Below are positions 538 to 63,103 of a stretch of DNA of 64,000 nucleotides, one piece after another. Made by a program: the position numbers and the translations under genes. The notes below the pieces were generated by a model. It saw only the letters and a list, made by a program, of their open reading frames with translations. It was not told the DNA's origin and made no database searches. Positions within the stretch are counted from its first letter, which is position 1; each line of letters starts with the position of its first letter. The DNA comes from Setoptus koraiensis. Taxonomy: Eukaryota > Animalia > Arthropoda. The stretch spans positions 19,220,001 through 19,284,000 of the forward strand of contig CM106586.1 in assembly GCA_048013815.1 (NCBI GenBank), given 5' to 3'.

Positions 538-2982
<2,445 letters not shown>

Positions 2983-12300: not shown

Positions 12301-13130
12301 GTTTCTTGGGACGACGCGTTCGAATGTGCGTTCGAAGTTGAAACGCGCGATGCACCAAAATCACAGACACAGATCCAATGACAATCCGCGGCGCTGCATC
12401 GATTTATCGCTGGCTGCCAATCGATTCGCGAATTGTCGACCCACAGTCGCTGGCTGCCACTTTTAACCGGCCAGACCTGGCCGTGGCCAGCGGCCCGAAC
12501 TGGTGCCCACTGGCCCGAGCGGCACAAAGATCATTAAAAGCGGCCATGGGTGAGCGCCGCAAATGTCGCTCATGTCCAGAACACATCAGTTGATCATTAC
12601 CTGGTCAGTGGACACTTCAAGTCTGGTGGAAAAACACGCGCAAACACAAACACGCGGTGCGCGTGTTTGGCACCAATTGCGGCACTGCCAACTGGAGCTC
12701 CGAGCGGCTCCCGACAGCTCCCAACAGCGCCGTCAGTTTCAACGGGCTTGCAGCGACGCGCCGCGCCAGTTGCAACTTGCAACCTCGAAGCCAGCTCGAG
12801 CGCGCCAGCTCGAACGAGCCGGCCAGAGGTCGCGCGAGCAGCAATTTGCATAAAGAACGGGCAGATTAGAACCGGCTACTAACAAGCGCCTACTAACAGC
12901 GACAACACAACCAGCGCGTGTTCTATCGGGCCGCCACACTTGAAATGCTTCCACTGCAGACGCTCGGAGATGATTCTTTCGCCTGCTCGTTCCTCGTTCT
13001 TCTCTTCTCTTCGTTTCTCGCTCCTCGTTCTTCGTTTCTCGCTCCTCGTTCTTCCTTTTCGCTCCTCGTTCTTCGTTCCTCTTTCTTCGTTCTTCTCTCG
13101 CTTCTTCTCGCTTCCCGGCCTCTCGTTGCT

Positions 13131-13258
13131 CGGCCCGCTCGCTTCTCGGCCCGCTCGCTTCTCGGCCCGCTCGCTTCTCGGCCCGCTCGCTTCTCGGCCC
13201 GCTCGCTTCTCGGCCCGCTCGCTTCTCGGCCCGCTCGCTTCTCGGCCCGCTCGCTTCT
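13131..13258. repeat. 16-bp minisatellite, 8 perfect copies
   Basis: CGGCCCGCTCGCTTCT x8, preceded by a degenerate CTCCTCGTTCTT-type pyrimidine tract. Confidence 0.95.
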
Positions 13259-13516
13259 CGGCCTGTCGCCCCCTCGCTGGCCGCTTCACGGCCCGTGCGC
13301 CTTCTCCGGCTCCCCGATCGCTCGCCCGTTCGCCCGGCCGGCGCTCGGCCGGCGACGGTCGCCACTCAACGGGCCCCGGCGAGCGGAGATACTTTGAATT
13401 TTAATTTCAACAGTTGCCGCGCAACTGGCGACATTTCGACAGGGCAAACAAGACGAGACATGCGAACATTATCGGAAAATGTCGCCGCTCGCCGCTCGCA
13501 TTTCGCTACTGGCTCA

Positions 13517-35607: not shown

Positions 35608-38600
35608 TCAGGAGCTTTGATGTTGCTTCTGGTTGATTGCGCTATTTCCTGATGAAATTGCCGGTTTGCTTGAGCTAGTTCTATTATTACTAGATGCAAT
35701 GCTAACTCCACTAGAATTGCCAGTTGCATTATTGGGTACACTACTTGGCGCATTAGAGGCTGATGCAGTAGTGGGTGCAGTTCCAGCTGCAGTGTTCGTC
35801 GCAACGCTAGGTACAGCACTAGGTGCATTGCCAGTCGTCGTACTCACTGAAGCACTTGCTGAAGCATTCGATGCAGAATTACTGGCACCACCGCTGGGTG
35901 GCTGAGGGCGATTTGGTACTCTATGAGTTCTCATGTTTTTCCTGGTGTCTCCTCCCCTGCTGGAGTGGTAAAGGTCGCGTCGCTTAGGCTGATCGCCCCT
36001 GTCTCTGATAAATCTCCTGTTGTCGTTACGATGACCTCTGCTATCCCTATCATCACGCTCCTTGTCATTTCGCGTCCGGTGATTTTCTTTGGCTTCGATG
36101 CTGTTGTTGGTCTTGTTTGCAGGGGGATTCGTTGTTCCAGCATTACTCTTCACTGCAGCCTCATCCTGCTTCACAGTATTGATAGTTTTACTGATAGTAT
36201 TATTATTATTGGCTGTAGTGTTAGATTTAGCCGTTTCTGAGGTTCTAGGTCCAGATGTTGTTGCTGCAGCCGCGAGAGCTGCTTTTCTCTTGTCATCCTG
36301 TTCAACCTCTGCCGCCCAATCTGTAATTGGTTGAGGATTGACACGAGATTGACTTTTGACATTATTACTGGAGTTTCCAGAATTAGCTTCGCCTTGGGTT
36401 TTCTCAGAGTTGGCAGAGTGTTGCGTTCGGGATGGCTGAGATCTAGATTCGCCATGTCGTTTGGGTGAAATATCTCGCTTGGGCTTGGGAGGATTGTAAG
36501 CTGTCTTATTGCCTGCTACAGATATATTGTTGCTCCTCATGTTATCGTTTCCACTATTGCGGCGGTTATCACGTGCATTATTGTTTACTGTGACAGACTT
36601 TGATGGATTTCGTGGAAATCCATCTTTTTCCAAATAAACAGGCCGATTCTCAGAATTCATACGATTACCACGATTATACACTCCTGGATTTGCCTTTGGT
36701 CCGTAAGAGCCCTGATTGTTATACTGATTTGATTCAGAAAATTGACGATCAGAGCTTTTAGTGTAGGGAACAGTGCTCATGTTCTTAAGTTGGTGAAACA
36801 TTTCTTGATTTCCTTTACGCAATGAGTCCAGTTCTAATAGGTGATTAATATGATAGTCTAGCAATATTTGAGCATTGCCAACAGCCTCAGCCGTACCTAC
36901 GAACACAAATGGTACATTTTCACGAATATCGTTTTCAGTATCCCCTTCGATCTTTACTCGATTGACACCAGACTTATCAACTATCTCTTGTATCACTGTG
37001 CCAAATTTACCAATGACTTTTCCAATGAGTGGACGCGGAACCTCAATAGTGCACTCAGCATATTCTAATAGAGCTCTTGCCTTGAGACAGGCCTCTTGGC
37101 TAGTAGCGCTAACATGGAAGGTATCATTGTCTTCGTATATCTCCATGACACCATTTATCTGACGTGCTTTCTGAATGTTCTGACCGTGAGCTCCTATTGC
37201 TAGTCCCATAAGATGACTTGGTACCTTGAATTCGACAGTACATAGACGATTTGAGGAGAAATGTGATGGGTTTCCGTCCATAGTGCCCATATTGTGACTG
37301 CCTCCAGGCATTCCAGCGATTCGAGTAGATTCCAATTTTTTGGCTACCTCCTCTGCTTTTTCAAGCAAAGCAATTTTCTGTCTTAGATTCCTAAAATGCA
37401 TCTCACACAACATTGATGATTTCTTTTCCATTGCTAGTAATTCAGCCTTTTTATCACGAGAAGGTAAAGGTGGACAATAACCGATTACAGTCAAAACACC
37501 GACAGATGAACTGTTATAGCGAACAGCTATAGCACACAATGATTGCCTAAATTGCTTATGAGTTTCAGACTTGGATAAAGAGCTAGTATTTAATTCCAAC
37601 AACTCCTTGGGAACGTGTATATCAAATTTGAAGAATGGATTGGACGAAGTGAGTAGTGGATGTGGATTTTTCAATCTTATCCTGTCACTGGGGACAATCT
37701 GATCTCCGTGCGGATGGTATGGATGGTTAACTGCGGCAACTATTGGAGGATTTGTGTGCGTCATGTGGTTGGGCTTTACAGCAAATAATTCGCCTCTTAT
37801 GTATCTGACATAGCCTGGCCACCAACCTGGTGACTCTTGCTTATCCTCAAGTTGAAATTCAACTTCCATGCCTTCAGTGATGGTTGATGTAAGAGATTGC
37901 TGTTGTGTAGACTGAGAATCATTTGTTCGATTATGATGTGGATTGCTATTATTACTAGTTGTATCTGGTGTAGCTGATTGATTTTGATCCTGCTGATGAC
38001 TGCTACCATTAACTAAATTGGTGTTGATGGTATTCGTATTAGATGTAGAGCAAACAGCTGAATTATTATTACTACTAGTATTTTTGGTATAGTGATTATC
38101 GGGCGGTGGTAGCCTAATACGCGATAAAGGATATCTAGCTGTAGGTTGCCAACTATTCTCAAATTCCAATGTAACCTCAACCATGTTAGAAGATAGATGC
38201 TCATTTGCAAAAAGTGGTTGATTCAGGTTCGAAATCATGGCAACATTATGTTGTTTTGGTTTGTTAATTAACGATCCAACGGCATCCATTAAGTGGTGTT
38301 GCTGGTTATGGGCTTGACTTGAGGAAGACACAGGGGCCCTCAATGCTGCTGAGTTATCTTGTGTCGTTGCATTATTAGCGCCGGCCATATTGGCAGTACC
38401 AACGGACTGGCTGTTTGTCGCTCTAGTCATATTAATACTGTTTATGTGATTCATAAAATGCGCTGATGTAGCCGAACTGACAGGCGGCGGCGGTTGCTGA
38501 CCAACAGCTTGCTGAGAACGCGAACTAACTGAATTGTTAGTGGAAGCTGTAGTATGATTCAACTGATTCATAGAAGCCACTGGAGCATTTGCGCCATGGT

Positions 38601-38865
38601 GGTGTTGTTGCTGATGGTGATGCGACTGATGATGATGTTGCTGATTGACAGGGCCTGTAGAGGAGGATGGGGAAGCCGCGGAGAGTACGTTCGCTGAAGC
38701 GGGCGAAGATAACTGTATTGACTGCTGTGTTGAAGCGCCGGCGTTTAATGCCTTAGGCTCATGTATGTCCATGATGTGTGCCCTGTAAAAGGCTCCATTG
38801 TCCCAGAGAACCTCAACAATACCTTCCTTAAAAAGCTCAGGTAGCGCTTGGTACTCGATGTTCAT
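35608..38865 (-). CDS. Fmr1: Fragile X RNA-binding protein family member, intronless, 1085 aa
   Basis: Agenet1 [20 protein letters not shown]...[11 protein letters not shown], Agenet2 EGMEVEF...[15 protein letters not shown]1 [19 protein letters not shown]2 [25 protein letters not shown]-like [16 protein letters not shown]. Confidence 0.92.
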
Positions 38866-40534
38866 GATGGTCTAGTGATCTTTTCAATAGTTGTAGATTA
38901 CAGTTTTTTCTGTCTGTTGGTTTGTTGAATATAAATTGTGTGATAATGACCAATAACGACAAAGCGACGGCGACCACAGCGGCGGCGTTTTAACTAGGGA
39001 CTCAAGGGGTCCGTTACAAGTATTACCAGCTATCCTAAAATGTGTAACGTATGTAGATATTGTTGTTGTTTATATGTATAGGAATAGACTTCTGTGTATG
39101 AATATGTATATATAAGTATAAGTGTATATAATTATTTTGAATATATATATACACGTATATAAATGTATACTTGTGATTGTATGAGTGTGTGTGTGTGTCT
39201 GTGTGTGTATGATGTGTTGTATGAGTAATAAATAATCAGTTAATTGTAATAATAATTAGCTTTATGTTTCATATATCTAATATAATATAAATATATATGT
39301 TATGTCTATCAATTTTATGTAGATTTTGTGAATAAAAAGAAGAGAACTAGAAATAGAGATAGGCGCTTCGATGGAGATTACAATGAATATTTACAATTTT
39401 TTCCACCGTCACACAATGTGTTTGTTAGAATACACACACGCATACACACACACACAAATACACACAATTGCTCACAATGAGCCGTGCGTCTATGCCAGCC
39501 TATAACAGTGCATACAACAACATTGCCAATGCATCCATGCACTACTGTGATGCTTCAGCACAGAGACAAACGAATGGACAGAATTGTTCTGCACATTGGG
39601 ACACACGCACAAAAAGTGTGCTGCTACACATCTACACATTGGCCAACACCAGGCTGTGTGATGCCACATCTGTGTTCAAAACGTTGCTGCGAAGAATATC
39701 CGCGAGGGCGGCGCTGTTCTGCTCTCTGCTTGCACTCGTTGCTCGTGTGTGCCGGCCTGCATAAGGTGCGATCGGTTTCGAAGAAAGATCGCTGTCAATG
39801 TTCTCGCTGAGACGTACCACGAAATAAGGTACTGTTTTTACGGAACACTCCGGAATTCGTTGAGCGTTGCTGAGGCGTCTCAAGCGCGCCTAGCGGATGT
39901 CCTTGCCACCACGCAATAAATGCTGACAGGCAATTCACACAGTACACGATGCGTCCGACATTCCCACAAATGGCACGCTCACAATACGGCAAGAAGAAGT
40001 TGTGCGCATTGTAGAGAGGGCCTAGTCGGATAAAATCAAACCCAATAGTATTGGGTGTCTCAATAATTGTGGTGCATTTTCTGTGCGCTTGCACACAACT
40101 CACTTGCGCGTGCACACTCAACACACAATACTACTCGTGTGTGTGTGCATTACGACAGGCCAAACACTTGGCTAACAAGTCAGATCAAACAGATTGCCTG
40201 CACAACAGTGACCAAATTACGCACATTCAGGCTCACACAAGTATACAAATGTTGCATTATATCGCACAGTAATTATAACAAAAGTCCGATGACACCCAGT
40301 AGTTAACAGCGACCAACCAGCAGCGATAGCCTTTCATGATCCTGCGCGCAATATAACATTTAGCTGCCTCACCAGAGGGCCGACACTCCGGCCACTATGT
40401 GCGTCCTGTTGTTGTTGTTACTGTAAACGATAATATATTATTCAAGTCCATGTCTTCCGGGGGCCCCTTCTTGGCAAGCTGTCGCCACAATTTAGCCGCC
40501 TCTACACATACACGCACACGTCGACACACATTAC

Positions 40535-41909
40535 ATGTATCAGGGGATGACCAACAAACCGCGTGTCGTTGCTAAGGTGAGTTTGAGTTACTGCTGTAAA
40601 ATTAACGCACTCTTCACCTTGTCTTTTCTCATAATAATTAATAATTTCTTTCTTTTCTTGCCTCTAGTACGACCTGTATTTCTCGAGCCATGCAGACGAT
40701 TCACTCTATCTGATGCGATTCCCGGCGATGAGGTCGCAACTTGAAAATGACCCAGCTGACATAGGCATAAAATTCAAGTTGAAATCTAGACGCTGCAAAT
40801 TGGAAATCAGCGCCAACGAGTCTAAGGCTAACTTTTCCATGGACACTGCCAGAACTTTAGCATCCAAATCAACACCATTCACGTTCGATGTTGATCACGT
40901 AAACAAGTATTTTTATTCGTCAACAACATCGAAAGTTGATGATATACAACTAATGATCGGCAAGATCACTCCCAATGATAAGAATATAGTGCTAAGCCCT
41001 GTTGATTACATCCTGAACATGAGACCGGATTTTTCACACTTTGATCGCAAGGAAGAGGTAGACATAAAAGAGGAACTCAAAGCGGTCACAGTTAAATTTG
41101 CTGCCCCCGACAAAGTTGGATATTCTGCAAGACCAACATATATCGATGAATCCCTCTCCGAGGAATACACAATCTTCACGTACCACAGTAGTGATTCCAG
41201 AATAGCCGGTGTAGCTAGGCTCGACCTACTCAGAGATATTGAAGAATCTATTAAAAGAGAACCTGGTTGTGATGGTGGTGATAGGCCTTCACCTACTTCA
41301 CTAGATGAGGACATAAAACCAAGGATTGAAAGTTTTTCGCCCAACAAGCCCCCCAGCCGAAATGATCTTAAACAAGCCAATGTTAGCATCAAAGAGTGCC
41401 TACTAAGAGCCAAGGTGGCTAGTTTTGATGAAATTTGTGTTTATATACAGAAGTTCACTGACGCTCAATTGACAGCCGATCAAATCTTGCCAACCGTAGA
41501 ATCGTTCGCTGTTCTTGTGCAGGGCAATTGGGTTATAAAGAGCGAAATATTGTACGAAGATGCTGGTGATTCTAAAAATCCAACAATCACTGAAGTGACT
41601 GGTATACCTGTGAGTAATCTGATACTTGCCAGAGATTATTTACTATGGAGTTTTTGTGAATTTGACAAAAACTCCATAGTAAATAATGGCAAGATATCGA
41701 GAGCTCTTCTTACAGACAAAGTGAAAATACCTGATCACGATGTGCTAGATTTATTGAAACAGTTAGCTTCGCTAAACAGCATCGAGAGAAAGTGGGAATT
41801 CAAATTACCTACTGACAATAACTTTATTCACAGCCATCAGGACATAGTTATGAGACAAAAGTCATTGTGGGCAGTGAGAAAATCCAATAAACTATCGAAG
41901 TTTTTCTAG
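40535..41909 (+). CDS. POLR3E: RNA polymerase III subunit RPC5, copy 1: join(40535..40576,40668..41909), 427 aa
   Basis: A 91-nt GTGAGT...CTAG intron gives VVAK|YDLYFSSHADDSLYLMRFP, matching the RPC5 N-terminus. Also L.PVDYILNMRPDFSHFD, AVTVKFA, AVLVQGNWVIKSEILY, ARDYLLWSF. Confidence 0.85.
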
Positions 41910-42419: not shown

Positions 42420-45409
42420 TGATGTTGACAGAAAATTGTAGACCGTTATTAACCAACATGTCGTGGTTACCATAACGATAACAAGGTACATTTCCCGGTA
42501 CATTTTGCCACCTCTCTTGCAATACGAAAAACCTGAGAGATTCCATACAAATGTCACAGTGCAGTGTTTTGGCTCAAGTTTTTACATTACACATACAACA
42601 ATGAGATAGTTTTCGAGAGACCAAGGAAGAAGAAAACACACGACATGAATAATGGCTGTCATGGGACGGCCATAAATGATGTGCGTTCTCGTGCGTGCAA
42701 TAGAAAAATCGCTAGAACCGAAAGGATCCAGAGACAGAGAATTTATGGCCCATGAAGCGCAATTCTGACATTTATCTCGCTGATTTATAAGGTATATTCT
42801 TACCTGTCTGATATACGCGGTAAAATCCGTCTAGTAAAGTGCGATTCGAGTAGAAACAGTTCGAGAACTGGAGAAAAGAGTGTACGAAATCAATTGGAAA
42901 TAAGATGGAAACAAGTGAAGAAATGTAATCAAAAAGTACTAAAATGTAGAAAGATTTGCAACATATTCATAGTCGTTTATATTCTAAGAAAGCGGATATT
43001 AATGGGATGGATTCGATCAAATTCAATGTATTTTGGCCTTCAATTTTCATCGTCATATTTCTCAACGGCTCTGGCAATCTTTTGGGCTCTCATGAGGACG
43101 AAGAAGGGGCGCCACACGCGAACCAGTCGGGATTCAACCACGACCCGGAAGCAAAGAAGAGAACACTGCTCGATGCAATGAGGGCTCGTGTAGCTTTATA
43201 CTTGAAAAACAGACATCTAAAACCGAGCTATTTTATATGGGTAGCACTCGATTATCTAATTGGACTCTACTTCCTATTCGTTACGATGGTACGCGGTTTT
43301 GGCAGCAAAAGTTACTTTGCTGCATTAGAAGAGAAATATTTGGTCAACATGTTTGCTCCCTATGGTTTCTCTCAATTGATGAACAGAGTTGTGGCGATAC
43401 TTCTCACAGAAGTCTACCTGTTTCGCACCAAGAACATCATCGCAAACATGAGGAAGAAGACTGAACGGCAATATCTGGGATATGCATACATGAACTGTCT
43501 CGATTTGACACCCAGAGCCTGGATTTATATTTTAGGTCTGACGGATAAAGTCCGAAGTAAAGATAAGGTGCATAATAAGAGAATCACTCACATCAGTCAG
43601 CATTCCAAGCCTCAGTGTCGAGTTGTCTCATCGGTGAATGAGGGACATCGAGGTCAATTTTTCTATGTGAATTGTAATCAACGTCGTCATGTTGATGTAC
43701 GCGGTTGTGATTCATTTATTATGGACAATCCGACATGTTCGGCACAAGCGATTTGCAAGGAAAATTTGTTCGATTTTGACGATGACTTCCGCGAAATCAA
43801 TTATCAGCTGAAATTTCCGAAGCAGCTTCTAGTAAAAGGGTCCCCCCATATAGTCGATCTGGAGTCGCTGAGAGTCGGAACTCACTGGTTTCTATTCACT
43901 TTCCTGATGATAATATTGGTCTGCCCAGTGCTTATCGGAGCTGTTTTATCGATTGAGTTTCGCTACAATGGCAGTACATTGTTATTATTCTTCAAGCGGC
44001 GTCTTTCACCGTGTTTATCCATGATCCTCGCTTGCACAATCATAATGTTTCAATTTGAGGAGATCGTAATCTTTCAACTTCACTGTGGAGTCTGCTTCAG
44101 CAAAGCTAAACATACGCTCAATTTTTCTCTACAGTTAATTGAATTGTATCGGTCCAAAAGAAGGCTAATTTCGAGCTACCGCATACCGTACTCAGTAAAG
44201 AGCAACACGAACGGAGAATCAAACAATCAAACTAGCCAAGACTACGAGATCAACGAAGAAGCGTCCACCGTCCAGAATAATTGCATATTGGACGACACAA
44301 TTATTGATAGAGATGAAACAAGTCCGATACTGAGTGATCTATCCGAAAAGATAGATCTACTCGTCAGGATGATTATGGAGCTACGCTCGGAATTCGAACT
44401 TCTAAGGCGACGTTTCACGCTCGATTTTAACTTGGAACTTCTTTTCAAGTTGCCATGTGTTATATTGACTCTGGCGGCGCTCATTTCGTTGCCCAACTTG
44501 AGCCTTTTGGAAATTCAAATGATCTTCGTTCTGTTGCAAGGATACCTAATTCCCATCTTAGTCCTCTGTCATTTTGCAGCTCTTGCCCAATCTAAGGTGA
44601 TCATCATGATACGAGTCATTCACTTACCTGTTGTTGTGACCCTATCTTGTATAACTCACCTCATCTTGTCATCACCGTTGCTCACCTGGCCCGCACAACC
44701 TCAGACACAACACGCCATAGTAGTGGCCCGGCTAGTGGGTGAGATGTAATGGTGTGAGGAAGTCGGGTCATCTTATCTCCAAATTCCTCTTATCGCCCGA
44801 TGACCATAACTAATATCATATTCTATCCACATTTTTTATCCGATCATATTTCCAGTTCAAGGCCATCTATCATGCCATACAGAATCTGATAACTTACAAT
44901 TCTCTCATGAGTAGCTGGAACCTCCGGCGACTGTCATCGATAGCGGAGGATCTGAATGATATCAATAATGTGGCGCTTTTTATCTTCACTGTGAACCCGG
45001 TTACTTTTGGTAACTTGCCTATGGTTTGTATATCATGAAAGAGGACGAATCTCACTATGTGCATTATTGAATGTGGTTTGTCTATATTAACGTCATCTCA
45101 TTTAATATTGTACCAATACATTCCATTCGAATATACATATTCTATAGCTCATTGGATGGATTGCATTGGGCATAGTATTGTTGTTACAATATGCAGTGTA
45201 GAATTTTTATATTTCGAAATGTGTAAATAGTATAAATTAAAATGAAAATTTTGTATGTGTAGAATGGGAACTATTTCGCCGTCAAGCTCATTGTCTAAAA
45301 AGTAATGTGCGATACAGAAGTATTTTCAACCTCTGTGTGATCGAAAAGAGTTCATTAGAGCTCGAATGGAGTCCATAGAGTCCGAAGATCTGGTGAATCT
45401 GTTCAAAAA
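42420..45409 (+). repeat. Left arm of a ~3 kb inverted segmental duplication (partner ~50452-53465)
   Basis: Continuous reverse-complement similarity, roughly 90% by eye. The inner edge is sharp at ...GATCTGTTCAAAAA; the outer edge is fuzzy. Confidence 0.9.
42956..45201 (+). CDS. Gustatory-receptor-like 7TM chemoreceptor, copy A: join(42956..44596,44856..45023,45148..45201), 620 aa
   Basis: Several hydrophobic segments and long hydrophilic loops. Two phase-0 GT-AG introns near the C-terminus yield AQSK|FKAIYHAIQNL...VTFGNLPM|LIGWIALGIVLLLQYAV*, ending in a GR-type TM7 hhhhhQY motif. Start codon uncertain. Confidence 0.7.
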
Positions 45410-50451: not shown

Positions 50452-53400
50452 TTTTTGAACAGATCCACCAGATCTTCGGACTCTATGGACTCCATTCGAG
50501 CTCTAATGGACTATTCTCGAACAAACATAGGTTGAAAATATCTCTGTGTCACACATTAACTTTTCGACAATGTGCTTGACAGCGAAATATTTCTCATTCC
50601 ACACATACAAAATTTTTATTTTAATTTATACTATTAGCACATGTGAAAATATAAAAGTTCTACACTGCATATTGCAACAACAATACTATGCCCGATGCGA
50701 TCCATCCAATGAGCTATAGAATATGTATATTCGAATGGAATATATTGGTACAAGATTAAATGAGATGACGTTAATATAGACAAACCACATTCAATAATTC
50801 ACATAGTGAGATTCGCCCTCTTTCATGATATACAAACCATAGGCAAATTACCAAAAGTCACCGGGTTCACAGTGAAGATGAAAAGCGCTACATTATTGAT
50901 ATCATTCAGATCCTCCTCTATCGATGACAGTCGCCGGAGGTTCCAGCTACTCATGAGAGAATTGTAAGTTATCAGATTCTGTATGGCATGATAGATGGCC
51001 CTAAACTGGAAATGTGATCGGATGAAAAATGTGGATAGAATATGATATTAGTTATGGTCATCGGGCGACAAGAGAAATTTGGAGATAAGATGACCCGACT
51101 TCCTCACACCATTACATCTCACCCACTAGCCCGGCCTACAATTTGACCTCCAAAGCATGCTTCATTACTATTGGAGGGAAGTTATAGGCAAACTAGGCGT
51201 GAGACTAGAGAAAACGAAAAGAATACAAGATGGCGTGTTGTGTCTGACAAGGTTTTGAGGTTATGCGGGCCAGATGAGCAACGGTGATGACTTTCTACGC
51301 TAGGTTATACAAGATAGGGTCACAATAACAGGTAAACGAATGAATCGTATCAAGATAATCACCTTAGAATGGACAAGAGCTGCAAAATGACAGAGGACTA
51401 AGATGGGAATTAGGTATCCTTGCAACAGAATGAAGATCATTTGAACTTCCAAAAGGCTCAAGTTGGGCAACGAAATGAGCGCCGCCAGAGTCAATATAAC
51501 ACATGGCAACTTGAAAAGAAGTTCCAAGTTTAGATCGAGCGTGCAACGTCGCCTTAGAAGTTCGAATTCCGAGCGTAGCTCTATAATCATCCTGACGAGT
51601 ACATCTATTTTTTCGGCTAGATCACTCAGTATCGGACTTGTTTCATCTCTATCAATAATTGTGTCGTCCAATATGCAATTATTCTGGACGGGAGACTCTT
51701 CTTCGTTGATCTCGTAGTCTTGGCTAGCTTGATTGTTTCCGTTCGTGTTGATCTTCACAGAGTACGGTATGCGGTAGCTCGAAGTTAGCCTTCTCTTGGA
51801 CCTATACGATTCAATTAACTGTAGAGAAAAATTGAGCGTATGTTTAGCTTTGCTGAAGCAGACTCCACAGTGAAGTTCAAAGATTGCGATCTCCTCAAAT
51901 TGGAACATTATGTTTATGCAAGCGAGGATCATGGATAAACACGGTGAAAGACGCCGCTTGACGAATAATAACAATGTACTGCCACTATAGCGAAACTCAG
52001 TCGATAAAATGATCCCTATCAGTACTACGCTGACCCATATTATCATCAGGAAAGCAAATAGAAACCATTGAGTTCCGACTCTCAGCGACTCCAGATCGAC
52101 TATATGGGGGGACCCTTTTACTAGAAGCTGCTTCGGAAATTTCAGCTGATAATTGATTTCGCGGAAGTCATCGTCAAAATCGAACAAATTTTCCTTGCAA
52201 ATCGCTCGTGCCGAAAATGTCGGGTTATTTATAATGAATGAATCACAACCGCGGACATCAACATGACGACGCTGATTACAATTCACATAGAAAAATTGAC
52301 CTCGATGTCCCTCATTCATCGATGAGATAGCTCGACAGCTTCTCTTATTATGCGCCTTATCTCTACTTCGGACTTTATCCGTCAGACCTAAAATATAAAT
52401 CCAGGCTCTGGGTGTCAAATCGAGACAGTTCATGTATGCATATCCCAGATATTGCCGTTCAGTCTTCTTCCTCATGTTTGCGATGATGTTCCTGGTGCGA
52501 AACAGGTAGACTTCTATGAGAAGTATCGCCATAACTCTGTTCATCAATTGAGAGAAACTATAGGGAGCAAACATGTCGACCAAATATTTCTCTTCTAATG
52601 CAGCAAAGCAACTTTTGCTGCCAAAACCGCGTACCATCGTAACGAATAGGAAGTAGAGTCCAATTAGATAATCGAGTGCTACCCATATAAAATAGCTCGG
52701 TTTTAGATGTCTGTTTTTCAAGTATAAAGCTACACGAGCCCTCATTGTATCGAGCAGTGTTCTCTTCTTCGCTTCCAGGTTAGCGTGTGGCGCCCCTTCT
52801 TCGTCCTCATGAGAGCCCAAAAGATTGCCCGAGCCGTTTAGAAATATGACGATGAAAATTGAAGGCCAAAATACATTGAATTTGATCGAATCCATCACAT
52901 TAATATCCGCTTTCTTAGAATATAAACGACCATGAATATGTTGCAAATCTTTCTACATTTCAGAATCTTGTGCATCACTTGCAAACTCGTAAACTCTCTT
53001 CTCCAGTTTTCTAACTGTTTCTACTTGAGTTACACTTTATACGACGGATTTTACCGCGTATATCAGACAGGTAAGAATATACCTTATAAATCAGCGAGAT
53101 AAATGTCAGAATTGCGCTTCAATGGACCATAAATTCTCTGTCTCTGAATACTTTTAGTTCTAGCGATTGCACGCACGAAAATGCACATCAGCTATTGCCG
53201 TCTCGTGACTGCCAATATTCATGTTTTGTGTCTCCTTCGTCCTTGGTCTCTCGAAAACTATCTTGTTGTTGCATGTGTAGTGTAAAAACTTGGGCCAAAA
53301 CACTGCACTGTGACATTTGTATGGAATCTCTCAGGTTTTTCGGATTGAAAGAGAGCGGCCACAATGTATCAGGAACAGTGGGACCGAATATCTTTGAGAT

Positions 53401-53465
53401 AGTCATGGTAAGCACGACATCTTGGTCAATCATGGTCTGGAATTTTCTGGCAAAACTAACATTTA
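50452..53465 (-). repeat. Right arm of the ~3 kb inverted segmental duplication
   Basis: Reverse complement of ~42420-45409; carries ~110 bp extra in intron 1 near 51130-51230. Confidence 0.9.
50660..52946 (-). CDS. Gustatory-receptor-like 7TM chemoreceptor, copy B: complement(join(50660..50713,50838..51005,51363..52946)), 601 aa
   Basis: Same splice sites conserved; C-terminus VHSK|FRAIYHAIQNL...FGNLPM|LIGWIASGIVLLLQYAV*; three in-frame deletions (7, 10 and 2 aa) relative to copy A. Confidence 0.7.
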
Positions 53466-55108: not shown

Positions 55109-55532
55109 ACAACACCCTGAAAAAGAAAACCATTGAGCAATCTCATCTTATACTTTTCAGCTACCCTTACAGACATACATGTAAGATTAGAATGGCTGTT
55201 TAATCAGGATAAATTATCGCAGTTAATTGGCTTCTCTGGTCGCTCGACAACTGTTTCGTACGATACACAATGTCTCAGTAAGTGAGCAGTTTTGTTTTCT
55301 GTTTGCCACTTCCCCAAATCTGATTCAGGGACAGGTAAACCGTCCCATTTGTTTGCCGGGAGTAGATCTCTCTTTGGCCAAAAATCCAGTATCAACTTGT
55401 TGTCACTGCTTCAACGAGGGCCCAGTGCATTGTTGCTCGAATTGACAATGCGATAACGATACGCAGTCTCTGTCTAGGCACAACAATTCACATATCAGCT
55501 TGGAGCTCAACAGATGCACCTCCACATTTTAG

Positions 55533-55867
55533 TCCATAGTTGATTTGCTCGGGCTCGTTTCTTATCCTCTCTGTAGAATTCGACATGAAATGCGTCAGGT
55601 ATTTGTTAAACGTAATGAAAAAAAAAAGTTGCGATATTCACTCTGATACTGCTGCATAGGTTTTCATCGATGACAATTACTACCAACGCAGAGATGCACT
55701 ATCTACATCCGGCGTAGATCGTGTCTAGATAGTTGAAAGCATCAATTGTTACGTGAAGCATAGTTATTCCGAAAAAGTGTCTTTAGTGTCGATTCGTCGG
55801 CCATAAATGTTGAGAGATGAATGACATGCATCAATTATATTTAAATAACTACAATAACATTCAATAG
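55533..55867 (+). repeat. Inverted copy of the intergenic region 62672-63019 (upstream of the PAN gene, downstream of GANAB)
   Basis: Reverse-complement match, roughly 85% by eye, including the CACTATCTAC/GTAGATAGTG hairpin (62820-62846 vs 55697-55723). Confidence 0.85.
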
Positions 55868-55991
55868 CTAATGCACCCAACTCGGTAGAGTGTCCACAGT
55901 GATTTCGGGTGTCTCAAGCTTTGGAACATCACCATCATAATGCAACAGAAAGAGCTAACTTGTACTGTTCAGTTCAGTTCAACTATCAGTT

Positions 55992-56632
55992 GTATCAGGT
56001 TCGAGAGTCTTTGTTCTATCAACGTAAAGATTTCCATGAGCATAAGATTTGTCGTTGTATTTACCCAAGACAATATCTAAGGTGATGGGATCTTTGATTG
56101 CTAAATCTAGACTGCGTCTCATTCTGTAATGCCTCGGTATAATAGTTCCGGCTCTTTGGAACAGAGGTATCGTTGAGATGTCAACAGGCATGTGTACAGT
56201 TTGGCCACCATGGTACAAGACGAAATTGTTGAGATCAAACCAAGCATTGACATCTTTCTTGCCAGGCAGATACACATTTACAGACTGAACACCCTTCTCC
56301 ATGACAGGTTTGACCAGTAAGGCGACTCCAAGACCATGCTGATCATCTAAATCAAATGTCTTCTCATCTTGTGGGTCATGGAACCAGTGTGGCCGTAGCA
56401 TGGGCATTCCTGTAAAATGTGATTCAAAAAATAATGTATACCAATAGGGTGCATAAGAGTATCGGAGTCTTATAGCATTCCTTAGGTGGTTTTGGGTCTC
56501 TTCGGAAAACATATAGGCCTCTCTTCTACGTGAATCGTGATGAGCATGAGCGCGGAAAAAAGGTTGAAAGGCACCAGCTTGAAACCATCTAATTACAAGT
56601 TCATCGGATTCTGGGTTTGAGAAGAATCCCAC
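55992..56632 (-). pseudogene. GANAB: Duplicated internal fragment of glucosidase II alpha, truncated at both ends
   Basis: 55992-56587 matches 63405-64000 with 3 substitutions that I could see. Homology starts at GFFSNPESDELVIRWFQAGAFQPFFRAHAH, downstream of the GH31 catalytic Asp motifs, and ends at LEPDT. Confidence 0.85.
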
Positions 56633-56635
56633 ACA

Positions 56636-56751
56636 TTGTACACATTGGTAGTGTGCGGGCAGTAAGGGCAGCACACTACACATTGGCCAACACCAGACTG
56701 TGTGATATCACATCTGTGTTCAAAACGTTGCTGCGAAATAAGGTACTGTTT
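56636..56751 (+). repeat. Shrunken relic of the region upstream of POLR3E copy 1 (39584-39838)
   Basis: 56676-56737 matches 39632-39693 and 56734-56751 matches 39820-39837, joined through a shared CGAA. Confidence 0.8.
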
Positions 56752-56787: not shown

Positions 56788-57982
56788 ATGTATCAGGGGA
56801 TGACCAACAAACCGCGTGTCGTTGCTAAGGTGAGTTACTGCTGTAAAATTATTGTAAAATTATCTTCTCTCATGCTAATAATTAATAATTTCTTTCTTGT
56901 CTTGCCTCTAGTACGACCTGTATTTCTCGAGCCATGAGGACGATTCACTATATCTGATGCGATTCCCGGCGATGAGGTCGCAACTTGAAAATGACTCAGC
57001 TGACATAAACATAAAATTCAAGTTGAAATCTCGACACTGCCAATTGGAAATCAGCGCCAACGAGGTCAAGTATTTTTATTCGTCAACAACATTCAAAATT
57101 GATGATAAACAACTAATGATCGGCAAGATCACTCCCGATCATAAGAATATACTGCTAAGCCCTGTTGATTACATCATGAACATGAGACCGGATTTTTCAC
57201 ACTTCGATCGCAAGGAAGAGGTGAACATAAAAGAGGAACTCGAAGCGGTCACAGTTAAATTTGCTGCCCCCGACAAAGTTGGATATTCTGCAAGACCAAC
57301 ATATATCGATGAATCCCTCTCCGAGGAGTACAAAATCTTCACGTACCACAGTAGTTACTCCAGAATAGCCGGTGTAGCTAGGCTCGACCTACTCAGAGAA
57401 AGAGAACCTGGTTGTGATGGTCACTTCATAAAACCAAGGGTTGAAAGTTTCTCGCCCAACAAGCCTTCCAGCCGAAAACAAGCCATCAGAGAGTGCCTTT
57501 TAAGAGCCAAAGTGGCTAGTTTTGATGATATATGTGTTCATATACAGAAGTACGCTCAATTGACAGCCGATCAAATTCTGCCAACCTTAGAATCTTTCGC
57601 TGTTCTTGTGCGGGGTGTTTGGGTTGTAAAGAGCGAAATATTGTACACAGGTATAACAATCACTGAAGTGACTGGTATACCTGTGAATAATCTGATACTT
57701 GCCAGAGATTATTTACTATGGAGTTTTTGTGAATTTGACAAAAACTCCATAGTAAATAATGGCAAGATATCGAGAGCTGATTTTACGAACAAAGTGAGAT
57801 TACCTGATCACGATGTACTAGACTTATTGAGCCAGTTAGCTTCGCTAGACAGCATCAAAGGAATGTGGGAGTTCAAATTACCTACTGACAGTAACTTTAT
57901 TCAAAGCCACCAGGACATAGTTATGAGACAAAATTCATTTTGGCAATTGAGAAGATTCAATAAACTATCGAAGTTTTTCTAG
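56788..57982 (+). CDS. POLR3E: RPC5/POLR3E paralogue, copy 2: join(56788..56829,56912..57982), 370 aa, 57 aa shorter than copy 1
   Basis: Same exon 1 and phase-0 intron (82 nt), open frame to the same terminal codons (NKLSKFF*), at least seven frame-preserving deletions. Confidence 0.8.
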
Positions 57983-62646: not shown

Positions 62647-63103
62647 TTTATTATTGCTAGACTACTGTTACCTATTGAATATTATTGTAATTGTTTAAAT
62701 ATAATCGATGCATGTTAGTCATTCATCGCAAAACATTAATGGCCGACGAATCGACACTAACGACACTCTTTCGGAATAACTATGCTTCACGTAACAATTG
62801 ATGCTTTCAATTATCTAGACACTATCTACGCCTGAGGTAGATAGTGCATCTCTGCGTTGGTAGTAATTGTCATCGATGGAAACCTATGCAGCTTTATCAA
62901 AAGGAATATCGCTACTTTCTTTCATCAATGTTAACAAATACCTGACCTATTTCATGTCGAATTCTGATGCATTCAACAGAGAGGACAAGAAACGGGTCCG
63001 AGAAAATCAACTATAGACGATGCACCTATAGAGCTCAATTTTGCAATGCTATACCTCTACATATGTTCCATGTGTTCAATTGTTCTTACAAATGAACGAA
63101 TAT

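Follow-up and report, generated by a model that had tools for sequence, protein, structure and literature searches.

Two RPC5 Genes Lie on One Contig

The stretch of Setoptus koraiensis DNA analysed here (the window, 64,000 nt) contains two genes for RPC5, a subunit of RNA polymerase III (Pol III), one of which is shorter than the other. The question that this locus raises is whether the shortened gene still encodes a working protein and whether it could define a variant polymerase, as a sequence-only reading of this DNA had proposed.

A blastn comparison of the window with itself placed both copies on one contig, on the plus strand and 16 kb apart. The parent gene, copy 1, consists of exon 1 (40535..40576) and exon 2 (40668..41909, 413 codons and TAG), separated by an intron of 91 nt. 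In copy 2, exon 1 (56788..56829, 14 codons, with the ATG at 56788 and a GT donor at 56830) is followed by an intron of 82 nt (56830..56911, phase 0, GT..AG) and by exon 2 (56912..57982, 356 codons and TAG). The residues encoded by exon 1 are identical, and the two introns can be aligned with gaps of 6 and 3 nt. Each copy has an ATG, a single phase-0 GT..AG intron, a TAG, and no internal stops. The encoded proteins, of 427 aa (copy 1) and 370 aa (copy 2), are 85% identical, and the genes differ by 8% of their nucleotides and by nine indels.

Exon 2 alone, leaving out the 14 N-terminal residues, was used as the query in the database searches, family scans, and structure predictions; the two exons were joined only in local scripts for codon counting. 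Exon 2 of both copies scored far above the curated Pfam cut-off of 23.1 bits for PF04801, the family of RPC5/POLR3E and yeast C37, the partner of RPC4/C53 (copy 1, 192 bits, E 2.8e-56; copy 2, 153 bits, E 1.8e-44), and a profile of 34 homologues matched residues 9-428 of human RPC5 (E 4e-99). Both copies share the same architecture of a dimerisation module, a flexible linker, and the winged-helix module WH1-WH2, without WH3-4, as is also the case in flies and nematodes (PMC7747717; bioRxiv 10.1101/2020.06.29.177642). The AlphaFold model of copy 2 matched the human RPC5 chains (8IUE_M, E 6e-21) and the tWHD1 crystal structure 7ASU (TMt 0.80, rmsd 2.4 A), and its N-terminal part matched yeast C37; it should be noted that these models lean on an orthologue-based alignment. 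Judged by its sequence, copy 2 is an intact RPC5/PF04801 gene.

The search for relatives yielded a single protein above 45% identity, P0001 (75%), which is an outgroup to both copies and the only RPC5 found in its species. The nearest homologues are mite-like, which agrees, like the few and short introns, with a mite as the source. A copy-2-like protein was not found in the searched database, and an exact-protein look-up of both copies in public assemblies returned no record. On these sequences, the lineage of P0001, the nearest available relative, appears to have split off before the duplication. Two RPC5s of 85% identity were seen in one other sample, SRR3100150 (dS about 1, omega 0.07). Recurrent RPC5 duplication in relatives was considered and set aside, as the runs SRR3100150-52 jointly hold four variants and a mixture of species is as likely as paralogy. 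Even a first gene for the partner RPC4 (PF05132) went undetected in a six-frame search of the whole genome, whether the threshold was E 0.001 or E 10; with uninformative controls, this outcome speaks neither for nor against a duplicated partner.

The Reading Frame Survived Seven Deletions

The protein alignment showed that copy 2 lacks 27, 6, 10, 3, 3, 2, and 6 aa relative to copy 1 (57 in total) while keeping its start, splice sites, and stop, just as had been described. In nucleotides, the gaps measure 81, 18, 30, 9, 9, 6, and 18, and all seven are multiples of three (3n). Their junctions in copy 2 lie at 57064/5, 57398/9, 57424/5, 57475/6, 57484/5, 57551/2, and 57653/4, and the segments of copy 1 without a counterpart are 40821-40901, 41236-41253, 41280-41309, 41361-41369, 41379-41387, 41455-41460, and 41563-41580. 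The orthologue P0001 of another species (Logan contig L005, 76% nucleotide identity) served as the outgroup. Since it shows the copy-1 state at all seven gap sites, every gap represents a deletion in copy 2.

The 10-aa loss had been read as two compensating deletions of 17 and 13 nt that leave ACTTCA in a shifted frame. The frame shift of ACTTCA stands in either parse of the 30-nt gap, but the parse itself is not unique: 13 + 4 + 13 nt requires no substitution, and 17 + 13 nt requires one. The edges of the 81-nt gap and of the second 18-nt gap are altered as well.

The noncoding paralogous DNA of the same window contains indels of 11, 8, 1, 19, 9, 10, 3, 4, 11, and 87 nt, of which three in ten are 3n, and within the coding sequence of RPC5, 37-43% of the short direct repeats are spaced at 3n. 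From these two figures, the chance that seven of seven deletions are 3n is about 5e-4 to 2e-3. This supports the earlier claim that the frame of copy 2 was preserved beyond luck. Meanwhile, the neutral chance of copy 2 remaining stop-free is not small (P 0.10-0.15).

The Deletions Spare Conserved Residues

Residues with at least 80% conservation among 32 distant homologues were taken as highly conserved (75 residues). The 57 deleted residues include no member of this set (permutation P 4.5e-4), and a test of the mean conservation of the deleted residues gave P 2.6e-4. The first deletion (27 aa) falls, as previously suggested, within the dimerisation module that pairs with RPC4. According to the AlphaFold model of copy 1, it takes out a confident helix (exon 2 residues 58-67) together with its loops, between the strands 42-48 and 80-89, and the model of copy 2 joins these two strands as a confident hairpin. 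The remaining deletions affect the linker (pLDDT below 50), loops, or the N-terminal start of a helix.

The same 27-aa segment, with the same boundaries, is missing in the RPC5s of at least five entries from other species (P0021, P0024, P0025, P0026, and P0027) and is shortened in P0019, P0022, and P0023. Two of the proteins that lack it, P0024 and P0025, are under strong purifying selection (dS about 1.0, omega 0.07). Since this loss recurs in other RPC5s, and the two tested are constrained, it is an ordinary tolerated length variant and no mark of a special polymerase; the proposal that it defines a variant Pol III is not supported, and the loss no longer argues for an altered pairing with RPC4. 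Four further deletions coincide with places where one to eight of 33 homologues are also short, and the 10-aa linker deletion has no counterpart among the 33. RPC5s of 391-398 aa without the helix excursion were observed on the contigs L011, L012, L013, L015, and L016 (Logan runs SRR3100150-52); two of them are the pair of 85% identity in one run.

The deletions of copy 2 are of the kind that working RPC5s tolerate, which supports a filter at the level of the protein. Two signals point to such a filter, namely the restriction of the deletions to 3n lengths and the sparing of highly conserved residues; against it, variable segments may be mutationally prone to deletion.

Copy 2 Has Escaped Ordinary Amino-Acid Constraint

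The substitutions tell a different story from the indels. The pairwise dN/dS between the copies is 0.63, with differences of 34/24/30 by codon position. After polarisation by the outgroup, 35 amino-acid replacements are specific to copy 2 and 7 to copy 1, and the nucleotide changes of copy 2 are spread 25/17/13 over the codon positions. The branch omegas were estimated with a purpose-written GY94 branch model comprising copy 1, copy 2, and P0001. The omega of the copy 2 branch was 1.26 with all branches free and 1.63 when copy 1 and the outgroup shared an omega of 0.18; its 95% interval is about 0.73-8.5, and values below 0.7 are rejected. It differs strongly from the background of 0.18 (LRT 33.4, p 8e-9), and it is indistinguishable from 1 and not significantly above it (p 0.26-0.61). 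The copy 1 branch gave 0.18-0.36. Ordinary amino-acid constraint on copy 2 is thus excluded, and the two copies do not show the purifying selection on both members that marks alternative Pol III subunit pairs of the POLR3G/GL type (copy 2 omega 1.26-1.63). The sequence-only reading had named a dN/dS near 1 combined with absent expression as evidence against itself; the first half of this combination is what was found, with a copy 2 branch at 1.3-1.6 that cannot be told from 1.

Changes are depleted at conserved columns in copy 1 (p 0.005) and in the outgroup (p 0.003), and in copy 2 a depletion is not significant (p 0.27). Nine residues are invariant across the 34 homologues and also in human RPC5 (V-Q-G-N-W, R-D, W, D). 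All nine are present in copy 1 and seven in copy 2, where Q285R and N287V turn the VQGNW of the WH1 hairpin into VRGVW. The replacements of copy 2 are denser in WH1-WH2 (23/161 sites) than in the dimerisation module (9/173; Fisher p 0.005). This contrast is one of branch length, as synonymous changes follow it too, and not of omega, which is about 1.4-1.6 in both domains; the branch measures 0.074 in the half with the dimerisation module and 0.212 elsewhere. The longest identical run between the copies, of 91 nt, gave p 0.03 in a gene-conversion test; together with the shorter branch in the dimerisation-module half, this is only suggestive of conversion between them.

This run includes a palindrome-bearing stretch of 53 nt in the WH2 coding region (57708..57760, plus strand) that is identical to 41635-41687 of copy 1, while the surroundings of the copies differ by 8-12%. 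The stretch carries two perfect inverted arms of 22 nt. The outgroup lacks the right arm, an in-frame insertion of 24 nt, as if the left arm had been copied by snap-back.

With a dS of about 0.12, copy 2 is a young duplicate. It combines the neutral substitution pattern of an unprocessed pseudogene with the absence of any disabling lesion (stop, frameshift, or lost start or splice site).

Flanks and Surroundings of the Two Copies

It had been stated that the similarity of the copies ends exactly at the ATG and the TAG. Near the TAG this is almost so, the similarity ending 4 nt past it. At the 5' side the similarity fades at the ATG and returns farther upstream. The upstream elements extend over 39627..39837 in copy 1, where the element faces an FMRP-like gene (35608-38865, minus strand), and over 56672..56751 in copy 2, both on the plus strand. 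They have in common a 67-nt element (39627-39693 and 56672-56737, 94% identity) that includes the motif ATTGGCCAAC, found at 56682 in copy 2, and an identical 18-nt motif with the donor-like AAG|GTACTG (39820-39837 and 56734-56751). The distance from the element to the ATG is about 700 nt in copy 1 and 36 nt in copy 2. From its sequence, the element may be a promoter or a 5' non-coding exon; in the latter case an intron would follow it, a long one in copy 1 and one of about 40 nt in copy 2. The flanks were not simply eroded up to the gene, as had been imagined, since this putative exon or promoter piece was retained.

An AATAAA hexamer lies within the coding sequence 18 nt 5' of the stop in copy 1 (41886-41909), in copy 2 (57959-57982), and in the outgroup (L005, ~1365-1388). 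If it acts as the polyadenylation signal, the 3' UTR is nearly nil, which could account for copy 2 managing without a common 3' flank.

The neighbours of copy 1 are conserved genes, namely those of a DEAD-box helicase and Nup93 and the facing FMRP-like gene. Copy 2 is surrounded by a patchwork of fragmentary duplications. A fragment of a GH31 glucosidase II alpha gene (55992..56630, minus strand) ends 42 nt from its upstream element; it is a 99.4% copy of 63405-64043 (639 nt) and represents an internal piece of the full gene (63104-66121, minus strand, 1005 aa). A further piece, 55532-55871, corresponds to 62668-63018 at 86% identity and in the opposite orientation. Between the two copies of RPC5 lies an inverted-repeat cassette of 11 kb. 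Its ~3 kb arms (42425-45409 and 50452-53453) are 88-93% identical, and each contains an ORF of 597 codons that has no Pfam match; the indels within this ORF measure 21, 30, and 6 nt (all 3n), and those outside it are mostly non-3n.

A third copy of RPC5, a relic, was found outside the window, 170 kb downstream (G000:C2:19429234-19430474; L004:1357-2096). Its ATG is changed to ACG, the intron is retained, and 1152 nt of exon 2 are deleted, leaving the last 29 codons; this deletion is in frame by chance. About 500 nt of 3' flank are common to the third copy and copy 1 (97%). A 30-nt stretch close upstream of the relic also occurs upstream of copy 2, and none was detected upstream of copy 1 by blastn. 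The third copy is an example of a dead RPC5 in this deletion-prone genome.

At the far side of the window, positions 1-26000 have a G+C content of 51-60%, against about 40% elsewhere, and contain a SOX-type HMG-box gene (538-2967, minus strand), no other ORF of at least 250 codons, and a 16-nt tandem repeat at 13107-13263. This region could represent repeat or foreign DNA, or a regulatory desert rich in GC. Comparing gene order with the outgroup contig did not fix the ancestral locus of RPC5, as the gene downstream on that contig (TBK1/IKK-like kinase) has no counterpart in the window.

Explanations for the Shortened Copy

The reading that we favour, giving it a little under an even chance, is that copy 2 is a young, still-coding, redundant duplicate in which lesions that break the frame or the fold are selected against and amino-acid constraint is relaxed. 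Copy 2 arose in this lineage when the single RPC5 (POLR3E/C37) gene was duplicated as DNA; the intron and the stretch of upstream element that came with it rule out a retrocopy. The indel pattern shows that selection has purged changes that break frame or fold, so that the fixed deletions are all 3n and confined to the flexible linker, one helix excursion, and dispensable loops. The substitutions show that selection on the amino acids of copy 2 has been relaxed, roughly to neutrality, as copy 1 provides the essential function. The product would keep the fold of the dimerisation module. Its ability to pair with RPC4 is probably preserved, and it could then join Pol III as a redundant subunit whose linker is shorter; its winged-helix module, which in human Pol III sits on RPC2/RPAC1/RPABC5, would be altered. 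The filter against stops and indels may act mainly since RPC4 would be sequestered, or the assembly of the polymerase upset, by an RPC5 that is truncated or misfolded. The intact ATG, splice sites, and stop, the match of the copy 2 model to human RPC5, and the different look of the decay of the third copy support this reading. Several observations stand against it: an omega of at least 1 along the whole length is pseudogene-like, the changes are not significantly fewer at conserved sites (p 0.27), and Q285R and N287V strike two of the nine invariant residues. Moreover, a stop-free frame is not rare under neutrality (P 0.10-0.15), and the setting is one of fragmentary duplications, with a very recent GH31 fragment abutting the upstream element.

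The same observations suggest that copy 2 might be an unprocessed pseudogene that has so far escaped both stops and frameshifts, its function having been absent from the start or lost after a brief working period. We regard this as rather unlikely, and as the strongest of the alternatives. An omega of 1.3-1.6 that is indistinguishable from 1, changes of 25/17/13 over the codon positions, conserved sites left unspared, and a broken VQGNW are all what it predicts, and the probability of no stop (0.10-0.15) is accommodated easily. The gene fragments nearby fit as well, and the 1152-nt deletion of the gutted third copy is also in frame. Copy 2 resembles young duplicates in a relaxed phase and unprocessed pseudogenes in its high omega, its setting among duplicated fragments, and the destruction already suffered by a sister relic; it differs from them in having no disabling lesion and in indels that are filtered for the frame and for dispensable segments. 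Neutral decay from birth would demand that all seven deletions be 3n (5e-4 to 2e-3), that they avoid conserved residues (4.5e-4), and that no stop arise, which jointly fall below about 1e-6 if independent; this figure is larger if the variable segments are mutational hotspots. In addition, frameshifts should have accumulated over any lengthy recent period of neutrality, at the rate estimated from the noncoding paralogous DNA (5 indels per 531 nt at roughly 7% divergence), and the start, both splice sites, and AATAAA are intact. Pure neutral decay of copy 2 since its birth is very unlikely.

Improbable to a greater degree is an expressed, specialised RPC5 isoform under positive selection, incorporated into a variant Pol III with altered RPC4 pairing or winged-helix contacts. 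The filtered frame and fold, a point estimate of omega above 1, and the concentration of replacements in WH1-WH2 (23/161 vs 9/173) agree with it, and paralogues of Pol III subunits exist elsewhere, such as RPC7 alpha/beta (PMC9877311) and the two C53 forms of Arabidopsis (PMC4417161). However, the excess of omega over 1 does not reach significance (p 0.26-0.61), and the contrast between the domains comes from branch length. The 27-aa loss recurs in the RPC5s of other species, two of which were tested and are constrained, and it is no signature of an isoform. The nearest available relative, in which one RPC5 was found, also appears to have diverged before the duplication took place. A variant Pol III built on copy 2 is speculative on the sequence at hand. 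Such a second form of the enzyme, with a shorter linker and with a winged-helix module reshaped so as to change the contacts with the core or with initiation factors, would be the first RPC5-based isoform if true, and we consider it unlikely.

The sequence-only reading had raised against itself the objection that the copies could be alleles. This possibility, taken together with haplotigs and an assembly artefact, is rejected as scarcely credible: a single contig carries both copies at a distance of 16 kb, their flanks are unrelated, they differ by 8% of their nucleotides and by nine indels, and conserved genes stand beside copy 1. Nothing beyond high similarity speaks for it.

RPC5 Among Duplicated Pol III Subunits

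In comparison with known RPC5/POLR3E/C37 proteins, copy 2 has the same architecture; it is set apart by a loss of 57 aa, the absence of the helix excursion of the dimerisation module, the replacement of two of nine invariant residues, and an omega of about 1. The closest precedents concern other subunits. RPC7 alpha and beta (POLR3G/POLR3GL) are alternative Pol III subunits of vertebrates encoded by two paralogues per genome (PMC9877311, PMC9151912); both occur across vertebrates and differ in their expression, and a given polymerase takes up one or the other (PMC9877311). The likeness is that a Pol III-specific subunit exists as two paralogues in one genome. In contrast to RPC7, the RPC5 duplicate is young (dS about 0.12) and shows no amino-acid constraint. 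In Arabidopsis, NRPC14 (C53) has two paralogues, both of which were found in purified Pol III by mass spectrometry (PMC4417161); in the literature searched, C53, C17, and C31 are reported as candidates for alternative subunits. In NRPC14 the duplication affects the same RPC4-RPC5 heterodimer module, but it is the partner C53 that is duplicated, whereas here it is RPC5 (C37). A paralogue of RPC5 was not reported in the literature searched.

RPC5 is normally single-copy, and C37 is unique even in Arabidopsis, where many polymerase subunits are duplicated (PMC4417161). If expressed, copy 2 would represent a natural experiment on the dispensable parts of RPC5, namely the helix excursion of the dimerisation module, a segment lost repeatedly in the RPC5s of other species, and a third of the linker. 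It would also show how far the invariant VQGNW hairpin of WH1 can change and test whether the composition of Pol III varies via RPC5. Even if copy 2 is decaying, it shows that the filtering of indels and the constraint on amino acids come apart in a young duplicate.
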